From positions 186,001 through 250,000 of the IMG/VR virus record IMGVR_UViG_3300017963_000190: a stretch of 64,000 bases of DNA. The stretch is one strand, 5' to 3'. Of the stretch, positions 2,072 through 51,597 are shown in pieces. The first letter of the stretch is position 1. Every line of letters begins with the position of its first letter. Below the pieces are notes generated by a model. It worked only from the letters and a program-made list of their open reading frames with translations. It did no database searches and was not told the origin of the DNA. Made by a program: the position numbers and the translations under genes.

Positions 2072-3373
2072 ATGGCTAAAAAAGAGAAGGATGACGCGAA
2101 AATAATGTCTGCAGTGGACGCGGTTTCTGTCGCGTTCGAGGAGCTGGACGACCTTGACTGCATTAACCTGCAGCAGGGGAAGCGCGTGCGTGATGCCATG
2201 TCCACCGGAAGCCTTTCGCTTGACCTCATTAAGGGTGGTGGAAACAAACCGGGCCTCATGGAAACCATTTTCGGCCCAGAAGGTTCCGGTAAATCAACCC
2301 TCATTAATTCGTACATCGTCAGCGCACAATCATTGAACATACCTGCTATCTTGTACGATCCAGAATCTGGCTCAGATCCGGTGTACATGCGCACGCAAGG
2401 CGTTGACCTGCGTTATCAGATCTCTGTTAAAGAGGGGAAGAAGACTGTCAAAAAACCCGGATTCTTCTACACACAACCAGAATGCGGAGAAGACGTCTAC
2501 CGTCATATCTTACGGACGCTGCGCCGACTTCCCATCGTAGATGATGGACCAGCTCAAATTCTTTTCTTGATTGATAGCTTTGAGGGGATGGCTAGCGAAG
2601 AGGTCGATGAGAAAGGTGAGGGTGGGCGTATTGCGGATGAAGCGCGCATGCATTCTTACTACCTAAAGAGAGTTGTTCCACGGTTGCGCCGTCGGGGAGC
2701 CATCTTGGTAGGCACCAACCAAATGCGTACCGCAATAGGCACGTATGGGAATCCCCAACAGGAATCTGGTGGGCGTGCACTACGTTACTGGCCAGGATAC
2801 AAAGTTCGGGTTTCTGTTAAACGTGTGGAGGCAGACAAGATTAAGGTGCAAACGCTTCCCGTCATTTGGCGTACGACGAAAAACAAGGCGTTCCCTCCAC
2901 ATCGTAGTACGGACATGCGTATCATGATGGGACGCGGTCTCGATCCAGCCTATGACGCGCTGTACTTCTTGAAGCAGCTGGGGTACATCGAGGTACGTGG
3001 AGGAAAGACAAAAATCCTGCTACCCGGACACGGTAAGGTGTTAAGTTGGAAAGACTTCCGGCGTACTGTAGAAAATCCTGAGTTCCGTGCCAAGTGCTTT
3101 GCAATGTTGCGTAGTAATGATACCTATCGGCGCTACTTTGAGCATAGCAAGGAGTCAACCTACTTCTACGATGCCGACTACACATTCGAAGATGAGGCGG
3201 AAGATGAGGCGGAAGATGAGGAGAAACTGGCACAGCAGGTAGAAGACGATGCTGCTGAGTACGACGAGATGCGGCGCAAGCGACGCAAACGGGGAAAGCG
3301 CCCGCACGGGAAGTCGAAAAAACAGGATCACGAGGATCTCGCCTTTGACGAGGAAATGATGTTCGATGAGTAG
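2072..3373 (+). CDS. recA: RecA/UvsX-like recombinase
   Basis: STGSLSLD, Walker A GPEGSGKS, Walker B LIDS, NQMR, ESGGRALRY, KNK motifs. Confidence 0.9.
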   Translation: MAKKEKDDAKIMSAVDAVSVAFEELDDLDCINLQQGKRVRDAMSTGSLSLDLIKGGGNKPGLMETIFGPEGSGKSTLINSYIVSAQSLNIPAILYDPESGSDPVYMRTQGVDLRYQISVKEGKKTVKKPGFFYTQPECGEDVYRHILRTLRRLPIVDDGPAQILFLIDSFEGMASEEVDEKGEGGRIADEARMHSYYLKRVVPRLRRRGAILVGTNQMRTAIGTYGNPQQESGGRALRYWPGYKVRVSVKRVEADKIKVQTLPVIWRTTKNKAFPPHRSTDMRIMMGRGLDPAYDALYFLKQLGYIEVRGGKTKILLPGHGKVLSWKDFRRTVENPEFRAKCFAMLRSNDTYRRYFEHSKESTYFYDADYTFEDEAEDEAEDEEKLAQQVEDDAAEYDEMRRKRRKRGKRPHGKSKKQDHEDLAFDEEMMFDE

Positions 3374-4409
3374 GTTGGATCCACAGTCGACTTCGGACTT
3401 GCTGCGCACCATATTAATGGTCGCGCGTAAGCTAGGCGACGATGACTACGGGTGCTTTTTGTTTTCCGCAGCACCTGCGTTTCAGGAGGATGTGTGTGGG
3501 TTGGTTGTACGTAGGCCAGGAATGGTCAAGTTCCGCGGGTCAACCGTCGAAGCCAAAGAGCTAGTGCACCGTTTCCATTTGTTGGGCTATTACGTACTAC
3601 TCTACAAATACGATGAATTATCCTCTTGGTACTCTTCTCTAGACGCGTTACCCGCGTACCGGGAGCCGTTGCAGGAACAGCCCTTACTTGAAATAGCGGA
3701 ACACCTTCCTCCACACCAAACTTACGTAGAGCTCTTTGGTAGCGGATCGCCGATGTTTGCTGCAAAAGCGCCCGCAAATGTGGAGGTTTATAATGATGTG
3801 TATAGTCATGTAGTCAATCTGTTCCGCATCCTGCGATACCCAGAAACACTGGGCAAGTTCTTTTTGCTGAGTCGTTTGTTCCCTCCGACACAGCCGATGG
3901 AGGAGTCTCAACTGCGGAGCCATGTACGATATGCAGAAGAGAGCGATCTTGTACTACTGGCTTATAGTTGGTTCATGCACACCTACCCAGTACTCTCTGC
4001 TTTTGTGGGGGCGCAGAGTCAGCAGACCGCATTGCTGTTTGATGGGAACACATCCGAAGTAGCTGATGCATTGATCGCGATAGATTCCAATTTCCTACTC
4101 TTTCGCGACCGCCTGATGCGCATGCAGTTCGAGTATAATGACTGGCGTCGTGTGCTTACTACTTACGACACAGATAAGACATTATTTTGGGTTGACGTGC
4201 CCACTTCTGGGCAGCATGCTCTTACTCCAGAAGAATGTGGGTTACTTGTCAACCATCTAACTTCCTGCGGAGGATCGGCAATTGTTTACATCAACGCTGA
4301 AGACCGCCATGAAATACTGGATGAGCTTTTAGCAAGCGAGGCGTCTAAGAGGCGCTCACGGTGGAAACTCATTGAGTTTAGTAGTTGCTGGATTTACAGA
4401 AAAGCCTGA
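3366..4409 (+). CDS. Dam/D12-class adenine methyltransferase-like protein, probably inactive
   Basis: PPHQTYVELFGSGS and EVYND motifs; DPPY replaced by DVPT. Confidence 0.65.
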   Translation: MSRLDPQSTSDLLRTILMVARKLGDDDYGCFLFSAAPAFQEDVCGLVVRRPGMVKFRGSTVEAKELVHRFHLLGYYVLLYKYDELSSWYSSLDALPAYREPLQEQPLLEIAEHLPPHQTYVELFGSGSPMFAAKAPANVEVYNDVYSHVVNLFRILRYPETLGKFFLLSRLFPPTQPMEESQLRSHVRYAEESDLVLLAYSWFMHTYPVLSAFVGAQSQQTALLFDGNTSEVADALIAIDSNFLLFRDRLMRMQFEYNDWRRVLTTYDTDKTLFWVDVPTSGQHALTPEECGLLVNHLTSCGGSAIVYINAEDRHEILDELLASEASKRRSRWKLIEFSSCWIYRKA

Positions 4410-4457
4410 AACCAGTACACATCATCAAACGCGCGTTGGCGCACAGGAGAGATTGAG

Positions 4458-4733
4458 ATGCCTAGGAAAGCAAAAGATTCTGGAACCAAGTCCCCCAAAA
4501 GCAAGCGGCTCGCTCCGGAGAAGATGGCCCGAGCTGCGCAAATGTTTTACAAGGAGGTAGGTCCCAAGGTGGTCACCGCCTCGAAGATCAAACAATTCTA
4601 CGCAAGCATGGGCCTGCGCGTTGATAGTCAGTTGGTGGAAGCACTGGCCAAGGACTTCACCAAGACGATGCTGGGCGCTGCCAAGCGCTGCGTCGGGAAC
4701 AAACGCGGCACCGTGAGGCCTATGGACCTGTAG
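4458..4733 (+). CDS. Bacterial-type histone-fold protein with basic N-terminal tail
   Basis: VVTASKIK...AAKRCVGNKRGTVRPMDL matches the R-x-T-V-x-x-x-D-L histone-fold signature. Confidence 0.7.
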   Translation: MPRKAKDSGTKSPKSKRLAPEKMARAAQMFYKEVGPKVVTASKIKQFYASMGLRVDSQLVEALAKDFTKTMLGAAKRCVGNKRGTVRPMDL

Positions 4734-4748
4734 TTTTGGGGGACCGCG

Positions 4749-5825
4749 TTGCCTCGTTTTCTCCATACAGCGGACTTGCACCTGAATTCGCTGCGGCGGT
4801 TTAGCAAGTTCTACCTCGACCGGGCGCAGATGATGCTGCGGGAGATCCTGCGTATCGGCCACGAGCACTCGGTGGATTTTATCCTCGTGGCCGGCGATGT
4901 TTACGACCGTCGGGACATTACTCACCTGGAGCGCCAGCTGCTGTCGGAGTGGTTGGCTACATCGGATATACCTATCGTGGCCATCAGTGGCAATCACGAT
5001 AAGCGTTCCAACGAGGTGGGAGACACTTGTTTGAGCTACCTTTCCTGGCTCAGTGAGAAATTCCACGAGCATGTTGTGTACGACGGTGCACCACTCATTG
5101 TGGAGATACGCGGCTGCGCGCTTATCCTCGTACCATTTCAGGGATGGATGGATCAGGAGCTATACTTAATACTGGATGCACTGGTTCCTAGGGCAGTGGA
5201 GTCCGATTTGCCGGTGGTGGTTGCGATGCACGAAGCCGTTCAGGGCTGCGTCACTGACGTGGGAATGACGGTTACCAAATCCAACCAAATTCGCTTGGAC
5301 GACGCATTTCCAGACGTAACGTACTGGGCTCTTGGTGACATGCACGTGAATCAGCAAGTAGCAGATCGAGCATGGTATTCAGGGTCGCCGCATCAGACCA
5401 AGTTCGATGAAGTGCAAGAAAAGGGCGTTCTCATCGTAGACACCGATGATCCAAGTAATCCAGAGTTTGTTCCTGTTCCGTCCATCCCGCTTTTGATGTT
5501 GACCGAAGAGCCATTTAAGTGGCCAGACCCCACAGAAGCTTTGGTGCAGTTCCGCCCAGATGGTCCGTCACCCGAGTATGTGCTACCGCCGAACGTAGAA
5601 ATACATCCTAGTGTAATCGTAGGCGGCATCGAAAAAGAGACAAAAGAGCGACAGCTGGTAGGGATTTTCGACGGTCTTGATGACGCTTTACTGCGGGCTT
5701 CCCTTCCAGGTGAGATGCTTCCTTTAGCATGGCGAATCGCTTGTAAACTGGCACGCACGCTGCAAATAGATGTAGAGCTACCAGAAAGATACCAGACTTC
5801 CACGGAGCCCACAGAAGATGATTAA
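4749..5825 (+). CDS. sbcD: SbcD/Mre11-like nuclease
   Basis: HTADLH, AGDVYD, GNHD, ALGDMH, YSGSP motifs. Confidence 0.9.
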   Translation: MPRFLHTADLHLNSLRRFSKFYLDRAQMMLREILRIGHEHSVDFILVAGDVYDRRDITHLERQLLSEWLATSDIPIVAISGNHDKRSNEVGDTCLSYLSWLSEKFHEHVVYDGAPLIVEIRGCALILVPFQGWMDQELYLILDALVPRAVESDLPVVVAMHEAVQGCVTDVGMTVTKSNQIRLDDAFPDVTYWALGDMHVNQQVADRAWYSGSPHQTKFDEVQEKGVLIVDTDDPSNPEFVPVPSIPLLMLTEEPFKWPDPTEALVQFRPDGPSPEYVLPPNVEIHPSVIVGGIEKETKERQLVGIFDGLDDALLRASLPGEMLPLAWRIACKLARTLQIDVELPERYQTSTEPTEDD

Positions 5826-24134: not shown

Positions 24135-24142
24135 GCAAATCT

Positions 24143-24230
24143 GGCGGGGTGTCCGAGTGGTTGAAGGAGCCGGGCTGTAAACTCGGTGCCGCAGTGCTAA
24201 ACATCGTAGGTTCGAATCCTACCCCCGTCA
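24143..24230 (+). tRNA. tRNA-Tyr(GTA)
   Basis: Cloverleaf with variable arm; ct-GTA-aa loop. Confidence 0.9.
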
Positions 24231-24299
24231 TACCGGACAGCGACGGCCGGGAGGCCCTTTACGCCAAACCACCTACCTAGGCTATGGGTGGTACGTCGT
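24231..24299 (+). ncRNA. tRNA-abutting pseudoknot motif, copy 2
   Basis: Same conserved blocks as copy 1 with different loops. Confidence 0.55.
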
Positions 24300-24389: not shown

Positions 24390-24462
24390 GGAGCGATAGT
24401 ACAAATGGCAAGTGCACCGGGTCGTAACCCCGCAAATCTAGGTTCGAATCCTAGTCGCTCCA
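24390..24462 (+). tRNA. Atypical tRNA (anticodon ambiguous: Thr-CGT or GTA)
   Basis: Good acceptor, D and T arms; anticodon loop tcgtaac off-register. Confidence 0.6.
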
Positions 24463-24492
24463 TTTCCTACGCAGTCTTGTAAAATACAGGGG

Positions 24493-25742: not shown

Positions 25743-25780
25743 GGCAGGTTGTCCGAGAGGTTTAAGGTGGTGGCCTTGAA
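25743..25780 (+). pseudogene. 5' half of interrupted tRNA-Ser(TGA)
   Basis: Acceptor strand ggcaggt, D arm, gtggc-cttgaa; pairs with the half at 26693-26742. Confidence 0.85.
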
Positions 25781-25833
25781 CAACTGGTTTGTAGTTATGT
25801 TCTAATAACAAAATTATATACCAGGAGTTCAGC

Positions 25834-26616
25834 ATGGACGCAAAAAGCAAGGCTGAGTGGCTACGGAAGCACAGATACTGGTCATACAAAGAAATCTCTG
25901 TCCACCTTGGAGTTCCTAAGTCTACTGTTTGTTACTGGCTACGCGACATTCAGCTTACGGCGGTGGAGCAGGCAGAGATTGGCGCTAGAACTAAGGAGCT
26001 AGTTAAGCATGCTGCGATTGCATCAAACAAGCGCAGAAAGGGAGAGAAAAGGCGTTACGCGCGCAGACGTTCTAGTGCTACTCGTGGGCCCAGCCACGCA
26101 GAGCGTGCTAGGGAGAACAGGCAGCATTTATTGACCAAAAGTAGGGAGCGTGTAAAGTTGCATGGATTACAGATGACCCAAGATTCCTTGGCTTTAGTAG
26201 GAGCTGCTATTTACTGGGCTGAGGGGGAGAAAATCGGCAGTATGGCTTTATCCAACTCCGACCCTGCGCTCCTACAGTTGTATGTTCGTTGGTTGACTAC
26301 TATTTTACGTGTTGATCCAAGAAGGTTATCTTTTAGGGTGTCCGCTCACTTAGATTGCTCCTTTTCTCACAGTGAGCTGGAAGAATACTGGCGTACTGTA
26401 CTGTCTATGCCTAAGGCTGTATTTGAGAAGCCGTATTCGATTCCTATTAAAAATAAGAAGAGGAGAAAAAAGTTGAAGCATGGAATGCTTCGTGTGCGCG
26501 TTTCGCGCCCATTGCGTAGTCTTGCTAAGTATTACTCGGTAGCTGAGATCCTTGGTGTGGACGCCGAGTCCTTGTTTGTAAACCGTGTATCACCATTACA
26601 CGTTTTGGAGGAGTGA
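25834..26616 (+). CDS. HTH + LAGLIDADG-like homing endonuclease
   Basis: SYKEISVHLGVPKSTVCYW HTH; AAIYWAEG and LSNSDP motifs. Confidence 0.7.
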   Translation: MDAKSKAEWLRKHRYWSYKEISVHLGVPKSTVCYWLRDIQLTAVEQAEIGARTKELVKHAAIASNKRRKGEKRRYARRRSSATRGPSHAERARENRQHLLTKSRERVKLHGLQMTQDSLALVGAAIYWAEGEKIGSMALSNSDPALLQLYVRWLTTILRVDPRRLSFRVSAHLDCSFSHSELEEYWRTVLSMPKAVFEKPYSIPIKNKKRRKKLKHGMLRVRVSRPLRSLAKYYSVAEILGVDAESLFVNRVSPLHVLEE

Positions 26617-26691
26617 CCGAATTGGCGAAAGTGCTTGGCTTGAAACCAAGTGTACCGAAAGGTACTGGGGGTTCGAATCCCTCCTCCTCCG
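26607..26691 (+). tRNA. tRNA-Ser(TGA), intact, nested in the cassette
   Basis: Cloverleaf; cttgg-ct-TGA-aa-ccaag. Confidence 0.9.
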
Positions 26692-26692
26692 T

Positions 26693-26742
26693 TTGAAAGC
26701 CATTGGGCGAAAGCCCCGGGGGTTCGAATCCCTCACCTGCCG
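26693..26742 (+). pseudogene. 3' half of interrupted tRNA-Ser(TGA)
   Basis: ttgaaagccat, variable arm, T arm, acctgcc-g. Confidence 0.85.
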
Positions 26743-29260: not shown

Positions 29261-29291
29261 TTTCCAATCACATATTGTAAAATAAGGCTAT

Positions 29292-30106: not shown

Positions 30107-30514
30107 ATGAAAGCCGGGAATGGCGGTAATAATGGAACCCAATCAAAGGCAGTGACCGTGGACTTTGAGAGCAACCTCAAAGTCTTGCATAGACCGAGAA
30201 ATTGTCCGTCGTCGCGTCCGTGCCGACGCCTGGAGTGTCGTTATCACTTGGCAATTGATGCGGTATCTAGGCGTAGGCGCCCAACGTTTCGACATAATTT
30301 TCCGGGGGTACCTCTTGAGGATCTCCAAGAAACCTGCGCATTAGAAGCAGCGGAGCGAAACGGTGGCTTAACTCACGCAGAGATTGCTGTTCTCATGAAC
30401 ACGTCCACGGAACAGATTAAACAGATAGAGCAAGTAGCGCTCAAAAAAGTGAGTATCAAACTCCGGGAGCTTAGGAGTACTGGTGATCTTTATCCCTCAC
30501 TTTTGTTAGTGTAG
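30107..30514 (+). CDS. Cys-rich protein with sigma70 region-4-type HTH
   Basis: RPC...CRYHL...TCALE; LTHAEIAVLMNTSTEQIKQIEQVALKK. Confidence 0.7.
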   Translation: MKAGNGGNNGTQSKAVTVDFESNLKVLHRPRNCPSSRPCRRLECRYHLAIDAVSRRRRPTFRHNFPGVPLEDLQETCALEAAERNGGLTHAEIAVLMNTSTEQIKQIEQVALKKVSIKLRELRSTGDLYPSLLLV

Positions 30515-30540
30515 CTCAGCAGGTAGAGCACCTCCTCGTG
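30505..30540 (+). pseudogene. 5' fragment of a tRNA (Thr-like)
   Basis: gttagtg-tagctcagcaggtagagca-cctcctcgt; no 3' half found. Confidence 0.5.
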
Positions 30541-30555
30541 GTTATTGGTCTTGAT

Positions 30556-30640
30556 GCCCGGGTCGCCTAGTTGGTCGATGGCACCGGATTTGTAATCCGG
30601 AAGCTTTAAGCTCACGCAGGTTCGAATCCTGTCCCGGGCT
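30556..30640 (+). tRNA. tRNA-Thr(TGT) with long variable arm
   Basis: ccgga-tt-TGT-aa-tccgg; agc/gct extra stem. Confidence 0.85.
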
Positions 30641-31352: not shown

Positions 31353-31405
31353 TTTTGCCACGCGTCTTGTAAAATACGGGAGAGTTGTCAGCACAGGAGA
31401 TTTCT

Positions 31406-31749: not shown

Positions 31750-32205
31750 ATGGGCAAGCTGCTTTTCAAAGTGACGCGTAAGGACCTGAAGGTCGAATTT
31801 TTTCGTGCCGGCGGTAAAGGCGGTCAGCATCAAAACAAGACCTCGTCTGCGTGCCGCATCCGGCATCCTCCCTCTGGGGCTGTAGGGGAGTCCAGAGAGG
31901 AGCGTAGCCAGCATCAAAATAGACGCATCGCCTTTAAGCGGATGGCGCAGTCCAAAAAGTTCCAGAATTGGGCCAGAGCTCAAGCTGCTGCTATTGAGCA
32001 GGGCTACCGAGACACGGAACAAAAAGTGTCTCAGATGATGGCGTCTGATAATGTAAAGATCGACTACGTCACCACTTGGGAATGTGATGGTTGTGGGAAG
32101 ACCGAGACCATCACAGCTTCCGATCCCAACAAGAAGCCCGAGTGGTTAGCTATAGGAGAGCTCCAAGAAGAGGAGCACTTGTGCACTAGATGCGCAGGCA
32201 AGTAA
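31750..32205 (+). CDS. GGQ peptidyl-tRNA hydrolase domain (ArfB/release-factor-like) with C-terminal Zn ribbon
   Basis: [31 protein letters not shown]; CDGC...CTRC. Confidence 0.85.
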
Positions 32206-42962: not shown

Positions 42963-43031
42963 GGCCCTTCTTGTAGCTCAGCTGGTAGAGCATGGGACTC
43001 CGAGGTCGTGGGTTCGAGTCCCACCTGGCCC
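42963..43031 (+). pseudogene. tRNA remnant lacking an anticodon arm
   Basis: Canonical D arm and T arm joined by tgggactccg. Confidence 0.6.
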
Positions 43032-43406: not shown

Positions 43407-43479
43407 GGTGCCGTAGCTCAGCAGGTAGAGCAGTGGACTGAAAATCCACGTGTCGGTGATTCGACTTCACCCGGTACCA
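43407..43479 (+). tRNA. tRNA-Phe(GAA)
   Basis: Cloverleaf. Confidence 0.9.
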
Positions 43480-46711: not shown

Positions 46712-47179
46712 ATGACCGACGATTGGAAAGAAAGGGCAGCTTCTATTTTGCTTCCTGGAGAAGTGATCCAGGAGCCTGAGAAGCCTAAACCAAAGAAAAT
46801 CAAGCGTAGTAAGAAGAAGCAAAGTTCTAAGCGGGTGCCTACAAAGGGTGTTTTTTCTTACGAGTATAATGAGAGCGATGATGGTCTTCTTATTAAGGGC
46901 CTTCAGCGAGCGCTAGACGTACCAGCGGATGGTATAATCGGGCCTCGTACACTAACTGCCTGGAAGAATGCCTATGATGCAGATGGCGTTTTTATGGTGA
47001 AGAACAACACAAATGCCGCAGTTATTTTGCCTGGCGTAGAGATTACGTTGGATCCTTTTGAGGAACGTATAATTGTAGTACCCAGTTCTGTGTGGCAGAA
47101 CGATAATTTACTTGCAATGGTACGGAGAGCTTACATCAGCATTGCTCCAGTTCCTGTACCAGAAAAATGGTGGCTATAG
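46712..47179 (+). CDS. Peptidoglycan-binding-domain protein
   Basis: LQRAL...DGIIGPRT. Confidence 0.65.
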   Translation: MTDDWKERAASILLPGEVIQEPEKPKPKKIKRSKKKQSSKRVPTKGVFSYEYNESDDGLLIKGLQRALDVPADGIIGPRTLTAWKNAYDADGVFMVKNNTNAAVILPGVEITLDPFEERIIVVPSSVWQNDNLLAMVRRAYISIAPVPVPEKWWL

Positions 47180-47218
47180 CTCAGTTGGTTAGAGCGCTGG
47201 TTTGTGGCATCAGAGGTC
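47169..47218 (+). pseudogene. 5' two-thirds of interrupted tRNA-His(GTG)
   Basis: G-1, gtggcta, D arm, tt-GTG-gc loop, aggtc; T arm absent; 3' piece at 47935-47950. Confidence 0.8.
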
Positions 47219-47248
47219 ATTAAAACTCTTGACGGCCACCCTTATTAT

Positions 47249-47321
47249 GGTACCATTGGTGTAGCGGTCTGCACGCTAGATTGTGGTCCTAGAAGCATCA
47301 GTTCGACTCTGATATGGTACC
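47249..47321 (+). tRNA. tRNA-His(GTG), intact
   Basis: G-1:C73; cloverleaf. Confidence 0.85.
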
Positions 47322-47326
47322 TTTAC

Positions 47327-47932
47327 CTGCCTTCAAAGAAAAACATCCCACGCGTTTGTGAGTTTTGTGGATCGGATTTTTTGGCGCGAATAACGGAAAT
47401 TCGTCGAGGTAAAGCTCGTTTTTGTAGCCGATCTTGTGCGGCACGAAGCAAGCCACCTGTTTTGGCAGGAGCCACTGGTCCGGCAAACCCAAATTGGCGG
47501 GGTGGTGTAATATGCTCCAGTGCTGGGTACCACTATGTTCGTATGCATGAGCACCCACGGGCCACCAATAATGGCTATGTAAAGCGGGCTGACTTGGTCA
47601 TGGAAGAGGTTTTAGGGAGGGAGCTTCTTCCAGATGAAATTGTGCATCATAAAAATGAAGACAAAGGCGACGATTCGCCAGAAAATCTGGAGGTAATAAC
47701 TTACTCCGCGCATTCTTCCCTGCACGGGAAAGCCCGTGGTAAAAAACCTGTTGAGCAAAAATCAGATCACCCAACTAATCGCCGTTATGAATGGCCTGCG
47801 GATGAGATACTTTTGCAATGGCGACGTAACGCGTCTTTACGTGAAATAGCGGCGGAGATGGGATGTAGCCATAAGAGTGTAGATAGACGCATAAAGAAAA
47901 TACAAAAACGGGGCAAAAGGCAGCTTTGGTAG
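47327..47932 (+). CDS. HNH homing endonuclease (probable CTG start)
   Basis: CEFC...FCSRSC, NPNWRGG, VHHKNEDKGDDSPENL, C-terminal HTH. Confidence 0.8.
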   Translation: MPSKKNIPRVCEFCGSDFLARITEIRRGKARFCSRSCAARSKPPVLAGATGPANPNWRGGVICSSAGYHYVRMHEHPRATNNGYVKRADLVMEEVLGRELLPDEIVHHKNEDKGDDSPENLEVITYSAHSSLHGKARGKKPVEQKSDHPTNRRYEWPADEILLQWRRNASLREIAAEMGCSHKSVDRRIKKIQKRGKRQLW

Positions 47933-51508: not shown

Positions 51509-51597
51509 TGCGGACCCGTTTCCACCTATCACTTTTCCTAAGTGTATTCTTGACACCAAGCCCCTCACTGGTTATATACTAGTAAAGGAGGTGCAGC

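Follow-up and report, generated by a model that had tools for sequence, protein, structure and literature searches.

A probable homing endonuclease gene fused to its own tRNA-Ser(TGA) within the anticodon loop of the resident tRNA-Ser(TGA) gene of an uncultured jumbo phage

A 917-base cassette inside a phage tRNA gene

The locus described here lies in a 64,000-nucleotide stretch of the IMG/VR virus record IMGVR_UViG_3300017963_000190 (positions 186,001 to 250,000 of that record), hereafter the window, in which a cassette consisting of a leader hairpin, an open reading frame (ORF) and an intact tRNA-Ser(TGA) is located in the anticodon loop of another tRNA-Ser(TGA) gene (Table 1). When the segments 25743-25780 and 26698-26742 are joined, ARAGORN calls a complete 83-nt tRNA-Ser(TGA), with a 7/7 acceptor stem, all arms and discriminator G. 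By contrast, none of 20,000 random joins from the window gave a tRNA, and combining one true half with a random partner gave 67 tRNAs among 39,512 joins, whereas a scan of the whole window for orphan T arms with a matching 5' acceptor strand recovered only this pair as a split tRNA. The inner and the rebuilt outer tRNAs are 64% identical, and the ORF is the only sizeable one in the insert. The GC content of the insert is 47%, compared with 52-53% in the flanks.

Table 1. Features of the split tRNA-Ser(TGA) locus (window coordinates)
Position	Strand	Feature	Basis
25743-25775	+	5' part (nt 1-32) of the resident (outer) tRNA-Ser(TGA); starts directly after the stop codon of the upstream 68-aa ORF	ARAGORN on the rebuilt gene; orthologous to the intact tRNA of contig L126
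25776-25780	+	Left TTGAA; 5-nt microhomology with the anticodon loop and first bases of the cassette	Aligns with the TCGAAC that starts the paralogous cassettes in L034 and L035; pairs with GTTCA in the hairpin
25777-25831	+	Leader hairpin sequestering the Shine-Dalgarno sequence AGGAG (25823-25827); contains a -10-like TTATATAC at 25814-25821	RNA fold -21.8 kcal/mol, z = -4.8; the TTATATAC motif also lies after a TTGACA box at 51572
25834-26616	+	260-aa ORF, probable homing endonuclease: N-terminal HTH, long helical linker, C-terminal LAGLIDADG-like domain (YWAEGEK...NSDP; E130, G131, K133, N141); stop TGA at 26614-26616	Pfam HTH_23, E = 4.5e-6; family invariants retained
26607-26691	+	Intact inner tRNA-Ser(TGA) of the cassette; its nt 8-10 (TGA) are the stop codon of the ORF; G73, long variable arm	ARAGORN; Rfam tRNA, 54.1 bits; all five anticodon-stem pairs differ from the outer tRNA
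26693-26697	+	Right TTGAA; nt 33-37 (U33, anticodon UGA, A37) of the outer tRNA	Contiguous with the 3' half; completes the loop CTTGAAA
26698-26742	+	3' part (nt 38-end) of the outer tRNA-Ser(TGA)	ARAGORN on the rebuilt gene; only leftover 3' half among 71 family loci (z = 12.3); aligns with the 3' end of the L126 tRNA

The split is a derived state. A distantly related phage contig (L126), which is collinear with positions 22.8-32.7 kb of the window by tblastx (DprA-like gene at about 45% amino acid identity; the same order Ser-GCT, Ser-CGA, Ser-TGA, Ser-GGA), carries at the same place an intact, uninterrupted 89-nt tRNA-Ser(TGA) (L126:2596-2684) with the same acceptor stem and D arm (70/83). 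This tRNA, too, starts right after an upstream small ORF, and the contig encodes no relative of the 260-aa ORF. L126 was recovered from metagenomes with an acceptor-stem pattern that found nothing in IMG/VR; no empty allele was found within this phage population. Exact searches of IMG/VR for an intact outer-type anticodon arm gave only chance hits in non-tRNA DNA, and a 25-mer across the rebuilt junction found nothing in JGI metagenomes. Megablast of the region against GenBank phages yielded no match, and single-protein searches with the flanking genes recovered only the same phage. Likewise, no donor of the inner tRNA was found, only the same phage and unrelated Ser tRNAs with 61-63/85 identity. 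The inner tRNA shares its variable arm with the phage's own Ser(CGA), so it may not be foreign.

A large protein family tied to tRNA genes

The ORF belongs to a large, undescribed family of about 7,700 protein clusters, mostly from Patescibacteria, which almost always lies directly in front of a tRNA gene. In 71 of 85 loci, a same-strand tRNA starts within -39 to +27 nt (one at +70) of the end of the ORF; in 28 loci, the two overlap, and in 15 of these, the stop codon is tRNA nt 8-10. The clades of the family follow the tRNA partner, and the three phage copies form one clade with 100/99 support. One of these, in locus L034, repeats the layout seen in the window, with the stop codon inside tRNA-Leu(CAG). 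Hairpins equivalent to the one in the window occur in the paralogous phage cassettes of L034 (z = -4.1) and L035 (z = -5.4), with different stem sequences. Split-and-replace, however, is not the usual mode of the family: only 1 of 85 loci shows a split tRNA, and a search for leftover tRNA halves around 71 other family loci yielded none beyond the window, except for a 15-nt 5' fragment in locus L111, which keeps a 14/15 copy of the first 15 nt of its tRNA upstream of the ORF.

The assignment of the protein to the LAGLIDADG homing endonucleases rests on the motif only. The one significant domain is the HTH, and neither Pfam (for LAGLIDADG, in the protein from the window itself) nor PHROGs and NCBIfam gave a family. 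Among non-HTH PDB chains, the family profile hits only the second LAGLIDADG motif of I-DmoI, with E = 0.02-0.07, and sub-threshold Pfam LAGLIDADG_3 hits in 2 members fall on the same motif; these E-values are above conventional thresholds. The acidic and lysine residues that match the active-site motif of I-DmoI are invariant across 75 divergent members, and tandem-doubled members exist, as is typical of LAGLIDADG enzymes. The domain model (pLDDT 85) shows a helix, a hairpin, a helix, a strand, an extra helix, two strands and a helix. ESM Atlas gives a TM score of 0.68 to an archaeal LAGLIDADG_3 cluster, but Foldseek searches with this model and with the whole-protein AlphaFold model (pLDDT 72) found no significant match in the PDB or BFVD, and hhalign against one bona fide LAGLIDADG protein was negative.

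Origin of the split: a favored scenario and its alternatives

Taken together, these observations support the core of the first-pass annotation, which read the locus as a cassette, bounded by a TTGAA duplication, that had split tRNA-Ser(TGA) at the anticodon by intronless homing and compensated for the gene it destroyed with a cleavage-resistant copy, but several refinements are required. The replacement tRNA is not a special compensation because the ORFs of this family nearly always sit fused onto a tRNA. The left TTGAA is part of the cassette's own hairpin, conserved as T[CT]GAAC in two paralogous phage cassettes, so that the repeat is better read as microhomology used in an illegitimate capture than as a target-site duplication, and the event was not classical homing between homologous flanks. 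The LAGLIDADG assignment is at the level of the motif only, and cleavage of the empty site and resistance of the inner tRNA are inferred.

The scenario that we favor, with moderate confidence and in the absence of biochemical evidence that the protein cuts DNA, is that of a free-standing homing endonuclease cassette whose unit is the hairpin, the HTH/LAGLIDADG-like ORF and a complete tRNA. Under this scenario, the resident tRNA gene, intact as it still is in L126, suffered a double-strand break in its anticodon loop, probably made by the cassette's own enzyme; the DNA of an anticodon arm is a natural pseudo-palindrome that would suit a single-motif, dimeric LAGLIDADG enzyme cutting with a 4-nt stagger in the loop. 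The break then would have been repaired by copying the cassette from a donor that shared no flanking homology, with the join using the 5-nt match between the first bases of the cassette (TTGAAC, the 5' strand of its hairpin) and the loop sequence CTTGAAA, so that both halves of the old gene were left flanking the insert. The cassette's own tRNA-Ser(TGA) now would supply the decoding function, and its changed anticodon stem could make it immune to the enzyme. Expression of the ORF is probably kept low in two ways: the hairpin would hide the ribosome-binding site on read-through transcripts, and, given the location of the stop codon, maturation of the tRNA by RNase P would remove the stop from the mRNA. 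RBS-sequestering hairpins have been described for T4 I-TevI/II/III, SegB and Aeh1 MobE (PMC2988022).

The principal alternative, which we consider unlikely but which survives best, is that the ORF encodes a tRNA-gene-associated DNA-binding protein, either a regulator or a domesticated, inactive LAGLIDADG relative, and that the split arose from ordinary illegitimate recombination between tRNA-array segments of co-infecting phages at a chance TTGAA microhomology. The lack of a significant structural match to LAGLIDADG enzymes is compatible with this view, as is the presence in the tRNA cluster of other broken tRNA pieces with no such ORF beside them, for example, at 30507-30540. Moreover, in Patescibacteria, the family sits very conservatively next to tRNA-Lys(CTT) across many phyla, which could reflect a conserved, domesticated role rather than selfish spread. 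The invariant residues, the tandem-doubled forms, the hairpins typical of phage homing endonuclease genes and the patchy distribution in the phage lineage, with the ORF present in the window and absent in L126, all speak against it.

Less likely still, the cassette could have moved as a discrete element, via a circular intermediate recombining at a TTGAA core or by transposition with a 5-bp target duplication. The perfect 5-bp direct repeats flanking the insert and the occurrence of HTH_23 in many transposases are in line with this possibility, and the right junction (tRNA 3' end, T, TTGAA) resembles the junction that precedes the cassettes in L034 and L035 (tRNA 3' end, 0-2 nt, TCGAAC), as would be given by a circularized or tandem unit. 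However, there is no integrase, DDE or serine/tyrosine recombinase domain, there are no terminal inverted repeats, and no other locus of the 85 shows flanking repeats of this kind.

That the insert is an intron, or that the two halves act as a split tRNA, is very unlikely, although both halves are undecayed, with all stems intact, and group I introns do occur in tRNA genes next to family members in loci L092 and L114 (84-88 bits). The same Rfam search that detects those introns found no group I or group II intron at E <= 1, either in the permissive mode or over the whole window; only 58 nt of non-coding, non-tRNA sequence is available; no allowed boundary has both the exon-terminal U and the intron-terminal G; and no bulge-helix-bulge forms for any of the six possible boundaries. 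The genome, furthermore, has bacterial-type signals and T4-like replication genes. An assembly artefact can be dismissed because the arrangement is base-for-base identical in an ENA assembly and a Logan assembly from other runs (100% identity over 1.5 kb), and occurs in 7 contigs and two IMG/VR contigs; all 7 contigs that carry the flanking ORFs also carry the ORF.

Relation to known endonuclease systems and implications

Free-standing homing endonucleases are known to sit in phage tRNA clusters and to drag tRNA genes along. The case in point is the GIY-YIG enzyme SegB of phage T4 (PMC2330249), whose target includes a conserved tRNA element, whose homing carries neighboring tRNA genes into the recipient and whose RBS is hidden in a hairpin; however, SegB belongs to a different nuclease family, lies between tRNA genes without splitting one, does not run into a tRNA and involves no isoacceptor replacement inside a broken gene. 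In Aeromonas phage Aeh1, MobE, an endonuclease gene with a hairpin-regulated RBS (PMC2988022), apparently splits nrdA without an intron or intein (the "genes in pieces" arrangement; Friedrich et al. 2007), but there the two protein pieces seem to reassemble and keep function, whereas a tRNA cannot work in two pieces, and function is supplied by a second complete gene inside the insert. A homing endonuclease that targets the anticodon-loop region of a tRNA gene is also known, but is carried by a self-splicing group I intron that keeps the tRNA functional, and no ribozyme is present here. Compared with I-DmoI and other LAGLIDADG enzymes, the family has the motif LYxAEGxK, followed by a hairpin and N-x-D/N, which aligns with the second motif of I-DmoI at E-values above conventional thresholds, and it has single-domain and tandem-doubled forms, but it also has an added N-terminal HTH and a long helical linker, there is no significant fold match, and the genes are not inside introns or inteins. 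Integrase-driven islands and prophages also insert into tRNA genes, often in the anticodon or T loop, and carry tRNA sequence so that a functional tRNA persists; those elements, however, carry only the displaced 3' segment and a tyrosine integrase, whereas here a whole divergent tRNA is carried, both old halves remain, the repeat is 5 nt of loop and no recombinase is present. Finally, the family members beside intron-containing tRNA genes in L092 and L114 show the layout expected if an intron protects the target, as in collaborative homing (reviewed in PMC3984707), but this was seen in only 2 of 85 loci and does not apply to the window. We found no described case in which such a gene, with no intron, breaks an RNA gene and carries a complete substitute.

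It is conceivable, although we regard this broader view as tentative and somewhat less likely than not, that the window captures in the act a previously unrecognized, very large class of mobile elements, tRNA-linked homing cassettes in which an HTH/LAGLIDADG-like nuclease gene is fused onto the 5' end of a tRNA gene that is at once the homology arm of the element, its cargo and an immune copy of its target. Under this view, separate lineages specialize on different tRNAs across Patescibacteria, Actinomycetota and jumbo phages, and the fused stop codon couples tRNA maturation to the shut-off of the nuclease.

Under the favored scenario, the junctions record how an endonuclease cassette can colonize a new site without flanking homology, a step that is usually invisible in the origin of mobile introns and free-standing endonuclease genes. 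The result at the level of the family may matter more. These protein clusters, with no annotation beyond an HTH, are tied to tRNA genes with near-complete regularity, their clades track the tRNA partner, and their stop codons are borrowed from the tRNA, which gives a directly testable source of tRNA-gene-specific nucleases and may also explain part of the turnover of tRNA arrays in jumbo phages and in small-genome bacteria.

An interrupted tRNA-Ser(TGA) gene in a jumbo phage

The sequence analyzed here belongs to an uncultured jumbo phage that is also represented on 260-kb contigs, ERZ27256783 k141_1965915 and IMGVR_UViG_3300017963_000190, and that encodes T4-like UvsX, clamp loader, gp46-like nuclease and ligase. 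Nothing similar is present in the GenBank phage collection. The window holds 33-35 tRNA genes. When the two halves of the interrupted (outer) gene are joined, ARAGORN accepts the product as a tRNA-Ser(TGA) with a 7/7 acceptor stem, all arms, a long variable arm and discriminator G. None of 20,000 random joins from the window produced a tRNA call, and a window-wide scan for orphan T arms with a complementary 5' acceptor strand returned only this pair as a split tRNA. Between the halves lie a TTGAA, a single ORF, an intact (inner) tRNA-Ser(TGA), one T and a second TTGAA. The inner and outer tRNAs are 64% identical, and all five anticodon-stem pairs differ. Independent assemblies are identical over the whole region, and every contig that carries the flanking ORFs also carries the insert. 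Thus, the split gene reported in the first-pass annotation is confirmed and is not an artefact.

Coordinates of the split tRNA locus and of other features noted in the window and in related loci
Sequence	Coordinates	Feature
Window	25743-25780 joined to 26698-26742	Rebuilt outer tRNA-Ser(TGA), 83 nt
Window	25776-26692	Insert as best written, 917 nt
Window	25776-25780	Left TTGAA
Window	25834-26616	ORF, 260 aa; its TGA stop is nt 8-10 of the inner tRNA
Window	26607-26691	Intact inner tRNA-Ser(TGA), Rfam 54.1 bits
Window	26693-26697	Right TTGAA
Window	24142-24231 and 24390-24462	Two tRNA-Tyr(GTA) genes, one 90 nt with a long variable arm and one 73 nt without
Window	about 24477-24488, 29275-29286 and 31366-31377	Recurring motif after tRNA genes
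Window	30507-30540	Orphan tRNA 5' fragment
Window	30556-30640	tRNA-Thr(TGT), 85 nt, with an extended variable region
Window	31750-32205	ORF with an RF-1 domain, inside the tRNA cluster
Window	42973-43025	tRNA-like element just after tRNA-Asn
Window	43413-43432	D arm of tRNA-Phe
Window	47204-47932 (with tRNA-His 47249-47322 and a weak tRNA-like hit at 47170-47240)	HNH_3 endonuclease ORF with a C-terminal HTH
Window	51572	TTGACA box followed by a -10-like motif
Window	57917-57933, 58372-58388 and 59915-59931 (minus strand)	Orphan T-arm-like stem-loops near the two minus-strand tRNA genes
L034 (contig from the same sample)	2366-2438 and 3212-3284	73-nt tRNA-Leu genes that lack the long variable arm
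L034	about 3286-3300	Recurring motif shared with the window
L035 (IMGVR_UViG_3300017963_000190, about 254.2 kb)	2498-3202	Second paralogue of the ORF in the same phage genome
L092 and L114 (Patescibacteria-type MAGs)	L092:3200-3509 and L114:2107-2395	tRNA genes interrupted by group I introns
L031 (Patescibacteria-type contig)	3983-5131 (minus strand)	Bona fide LAGLIDADG_3/LAGLIDADG_1 ORF and GIY-YIG ORF within 2 kb

The split is a derived insertion. A search of metagenomes with a pattern requiring the acceptor stem and the start of the D arm of the outer tRNA at normal tRNA spacing identified L126, a 28-kb JGI contig that is collinear with window 22.8-32.7 kb at the protein level, with a DprA-like gene that is about 45% identical and the same order Ser-GCT, Ser-CGA, Ser-TGA, Ser-GGA, Thr. 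At the corresponding place, L126 has an intact 89-nt tRNA-Ser(TGA) that shares 70 of 83 positions with the rebuilt outer gene, including the whole acceptor stem and D arm, and starts directly after the stop of a small upstream ORF, exactly as the outer gene does. L126 has no relative of the ORF. This is the empty site that the first-pass annotation called for, although in a distant relative. No empty allele exists in the sampled population of this phage, which comprises a single lineage whose copies are 100% identical, so that the insertion cannot be dated.

The insert does not appear to be an intron. The permissive Rfam search of 22-30 kb and the gathering-threshold search of the whole window found only tRNAs, although the same tool detects group I introns, at 87.9 and 83.8 bits, in the L092 and L114 tRNA genes, so the method works. 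No allowed boundary has both a 5'-exon U and an intron-final G, no bulge-helix-bulge forms for any of the six boundaries that the repeat allows, and only 58 nt of the insert is neither ORF nor tRNA.

Other apparently broken or unusual tRNAs are found in the window and in L034. The orphan 5' fragment consists of an acceptor strand plus a D arm 20/20 identical to that of tRNA-Phe and lies about 15 nt upstream of tRNA-Thr(TGT), itself unusually extended for a Thr tRNA; no 3' partner was found. The element next to tRNA-Asn matches the Rfam tRNA model only over positions 7-64 (32.4 bits) and is not called by ARAGORN, having D and T arms but an aberrant middle, and the minus-strand stem-loops might be further tRNA remnants or uncalled tRNAs. 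The tRNA-Tyr genes of the window and the tRNA-Leu genes of L034 are both unusual for bacterial-type class II tRNAs. Furthermore, the HNH_3 ORF lies directly after tRNA-His; its listed GTG start overlaps the tRNA, so the true start is probably downstream. This is a second, unrelated endonuclease gene abutting a tRNA in the cluster.

The encoded protein and its phage paralogues

In the protein encoded by the insert, Pfam detects only an N-terminal HTH_23. A profile built from the first homologues retrieved 7,728 cluster representatives at E <= 1e-3, typically of 220-235 aa, with some tandem-doubled forms of 420-576 aa. W35, E130, G131, N141 and W186 are invariant across 75 divergent members and lie in a motif LYWAEGxK ... 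NSDP. Among solved structures, the only non-HTH hits of the family profile are seven I-DmoI sequences, all aligned on the second LAGLIDADG motif of I-DmoI (LYVAEGDK ... WNKN) at E = 0.02-0.07. Two doubled members give sub-threshold Pfam LAGLIDADG_3 hits on the same motif, and the ESM Atlas structure search gives TM 0.68 to an archaeal cluster bearing LAGLIDADG_3. However, Foldseek with a confident domain model (pLDDT 85) found no LAGLIDADG enzyme in the PDB or BFVD, and hhalign against one genuine LAGLIDADG protein was negative. The fold assignment is weak, and we therefore refer to the domain as LAGLIDADG-like at the motif level, with membership unproven.

The same phage has a second copy of the ORF about 4 kb beyond the end of the window (L035, 33% identity), directly after tRNA-Val(TAC) but with no tRNA after it, and another contig from the same sample has a third copy (L034, 37% identity), located between tRNA-Leu(AAG) and tRNA-Leu(CAG), with its stop inside the latter. 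The three proteins form one clade with 100/99 support. A recurring motif, (C/A)TTGTAAAATA, that lies 10-25 nt after tRNA genes and before the next ORF in the window is shared by the L034 contig; it is probably a phage promoter and suggests that L034 comes from a related phage.

The 5' flanks of the three copies align from a shared T[CT]GAAC that begins 0-2 nt after the upstream tRNA in L034 and L035, and each flank folds into a stable hairpin whose 3' strand contains the Shine-Dalgarno sequence (z-scores of -4.8, -4.1 and -5.4), with stem sequences that differ between copies. In the window, the outer stem is UGAAC / GUUCA. The left TTGAA is therefore cassette sequence, whereas the outer tRNA's own U33-A37 is the right-hand copy, and the unambiguous break is between nt 32 and 38. 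Accordingly, what the first-pass annotation described as a duplication is a 5-nt microhomology between the first bases of the cassette and the loop CTTGAAA. Hairpins that hide the RBS, often with a promoter inside, are the documented control of T4 I-TevI/II/III, SegB and Aeh1 MobE (PMC2988022); a -10-like TTATATAC lies in the hairpin of the window, and the same motif follows a TTGACA box elsewhere in the window.

Inferred route of insertion

In the absence of activity data, the mechanism can only be inferred. Under this scenario, the enzyme breaks ORF-less tRNA-Ser(TGA) genes, and a break in the loop is what a dimeric single-motif enzyme would make on the pseudo-palindromic DNA of an anticodon arm. 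Normal homing between homologous flanks would simply replace the tRNA of the recipient; here, by inference, the donor and recipient did not share flanks, so the break was healed by copying the unit through the TTGAA microhomology, and both old halves were left in place. The right junction (tRNA 3' end, T, TTGAA) resembles the start of a further cassette or of a circularised unit, and a tandem or circular donor is therefore possible; we cannot separate these routes. The inner tRNA is inferred to keep decoding and may be immune because its stem differs at every pair.

Additional traces of mobility were detected. One family locus, L111, carries, about 78 nt upstream of its ORF, a 14/15 copy of the first 15 nt of its downstream tRNA-Lys, and the two intron-containing tRNA genes, in L092 and L114, each lie immediately next to a member of the family, which is the layout expected for collaborative homing. 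Separately from these traces, in L031, the contig that carries family member P0019 inside a tRNA array, the LAGLIDADG_3/LAGLIDADG_1 and GIY-YIG ORFs form a local cluster of endonuclease genes. The GC content of the insert is 47%, against 52-53% in the flanks. However, no other of 71 loci keeps a 3' half, so the window is the only split-and-replace case seen.

Association of the family with tRNA genes

We fetched 80 loci from species genomes and 3 further phage loci, and added L031 and the window. In 71 of these 85 loci, a same-strand tRNA gene starts within 100 nt of the stop of the ORF, and 70 of these start between -39 and +27 nt, whereas, by our rough estimate, a random gene in a genome with about 45 tRNAs per Mb would show this in well under 1% of cases. 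The partners are Lys-CTT (55), Met (5), Gly-GCC (4), Gln (3), Leu, Val, Pro and Ser. Many Lys-CTT loci are probably orthologous, so the number of independent associations is smaller than 71, but it still spans at least eight tRNA species. A maximum-likelihood tree shows that clades follow the tRNA partner, with 100/99 support for the Lys clade and 100/95 for the Met clade. In 28 loci, the ORF and the tRNA overlap, and in 15 of those 28, the stop codon is tRNA nt 8-10 (U8-R9-R10 reads TAG, TAA or TGA). In the window, RNase P cleavage at 26606/26607 would strip the stop codon from the mRNA, an inferred feature that is shared by the 28 overlapping loci.

The closest system is T4 SegB, a free-standing endonuclease in the tRNA cluster that recognises a tRNA element and spreads neighbouring tRNA genes (PMC2330249). 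Aeh1 MobE shows intron-less splitting of a gene, and I-SspI shows anticodon-region targeting, but from within an intron (PMC3984707). Literature searches for this arrangement or this family found nothing, and both the specific event, a tRNA gene split by a cassette carrying a whole isoacceptor, and the family-wide ORF-tRNA fusion appear undescribed.

The layout seen in the window, with the ORF stop inside a tRNA, is the standard module of the family. Whereas the first-pass annotation viewed the element as compensating for the gene that it destroys, the inner tRNA belongs to the cassette rather than being an ad hoc compensation.
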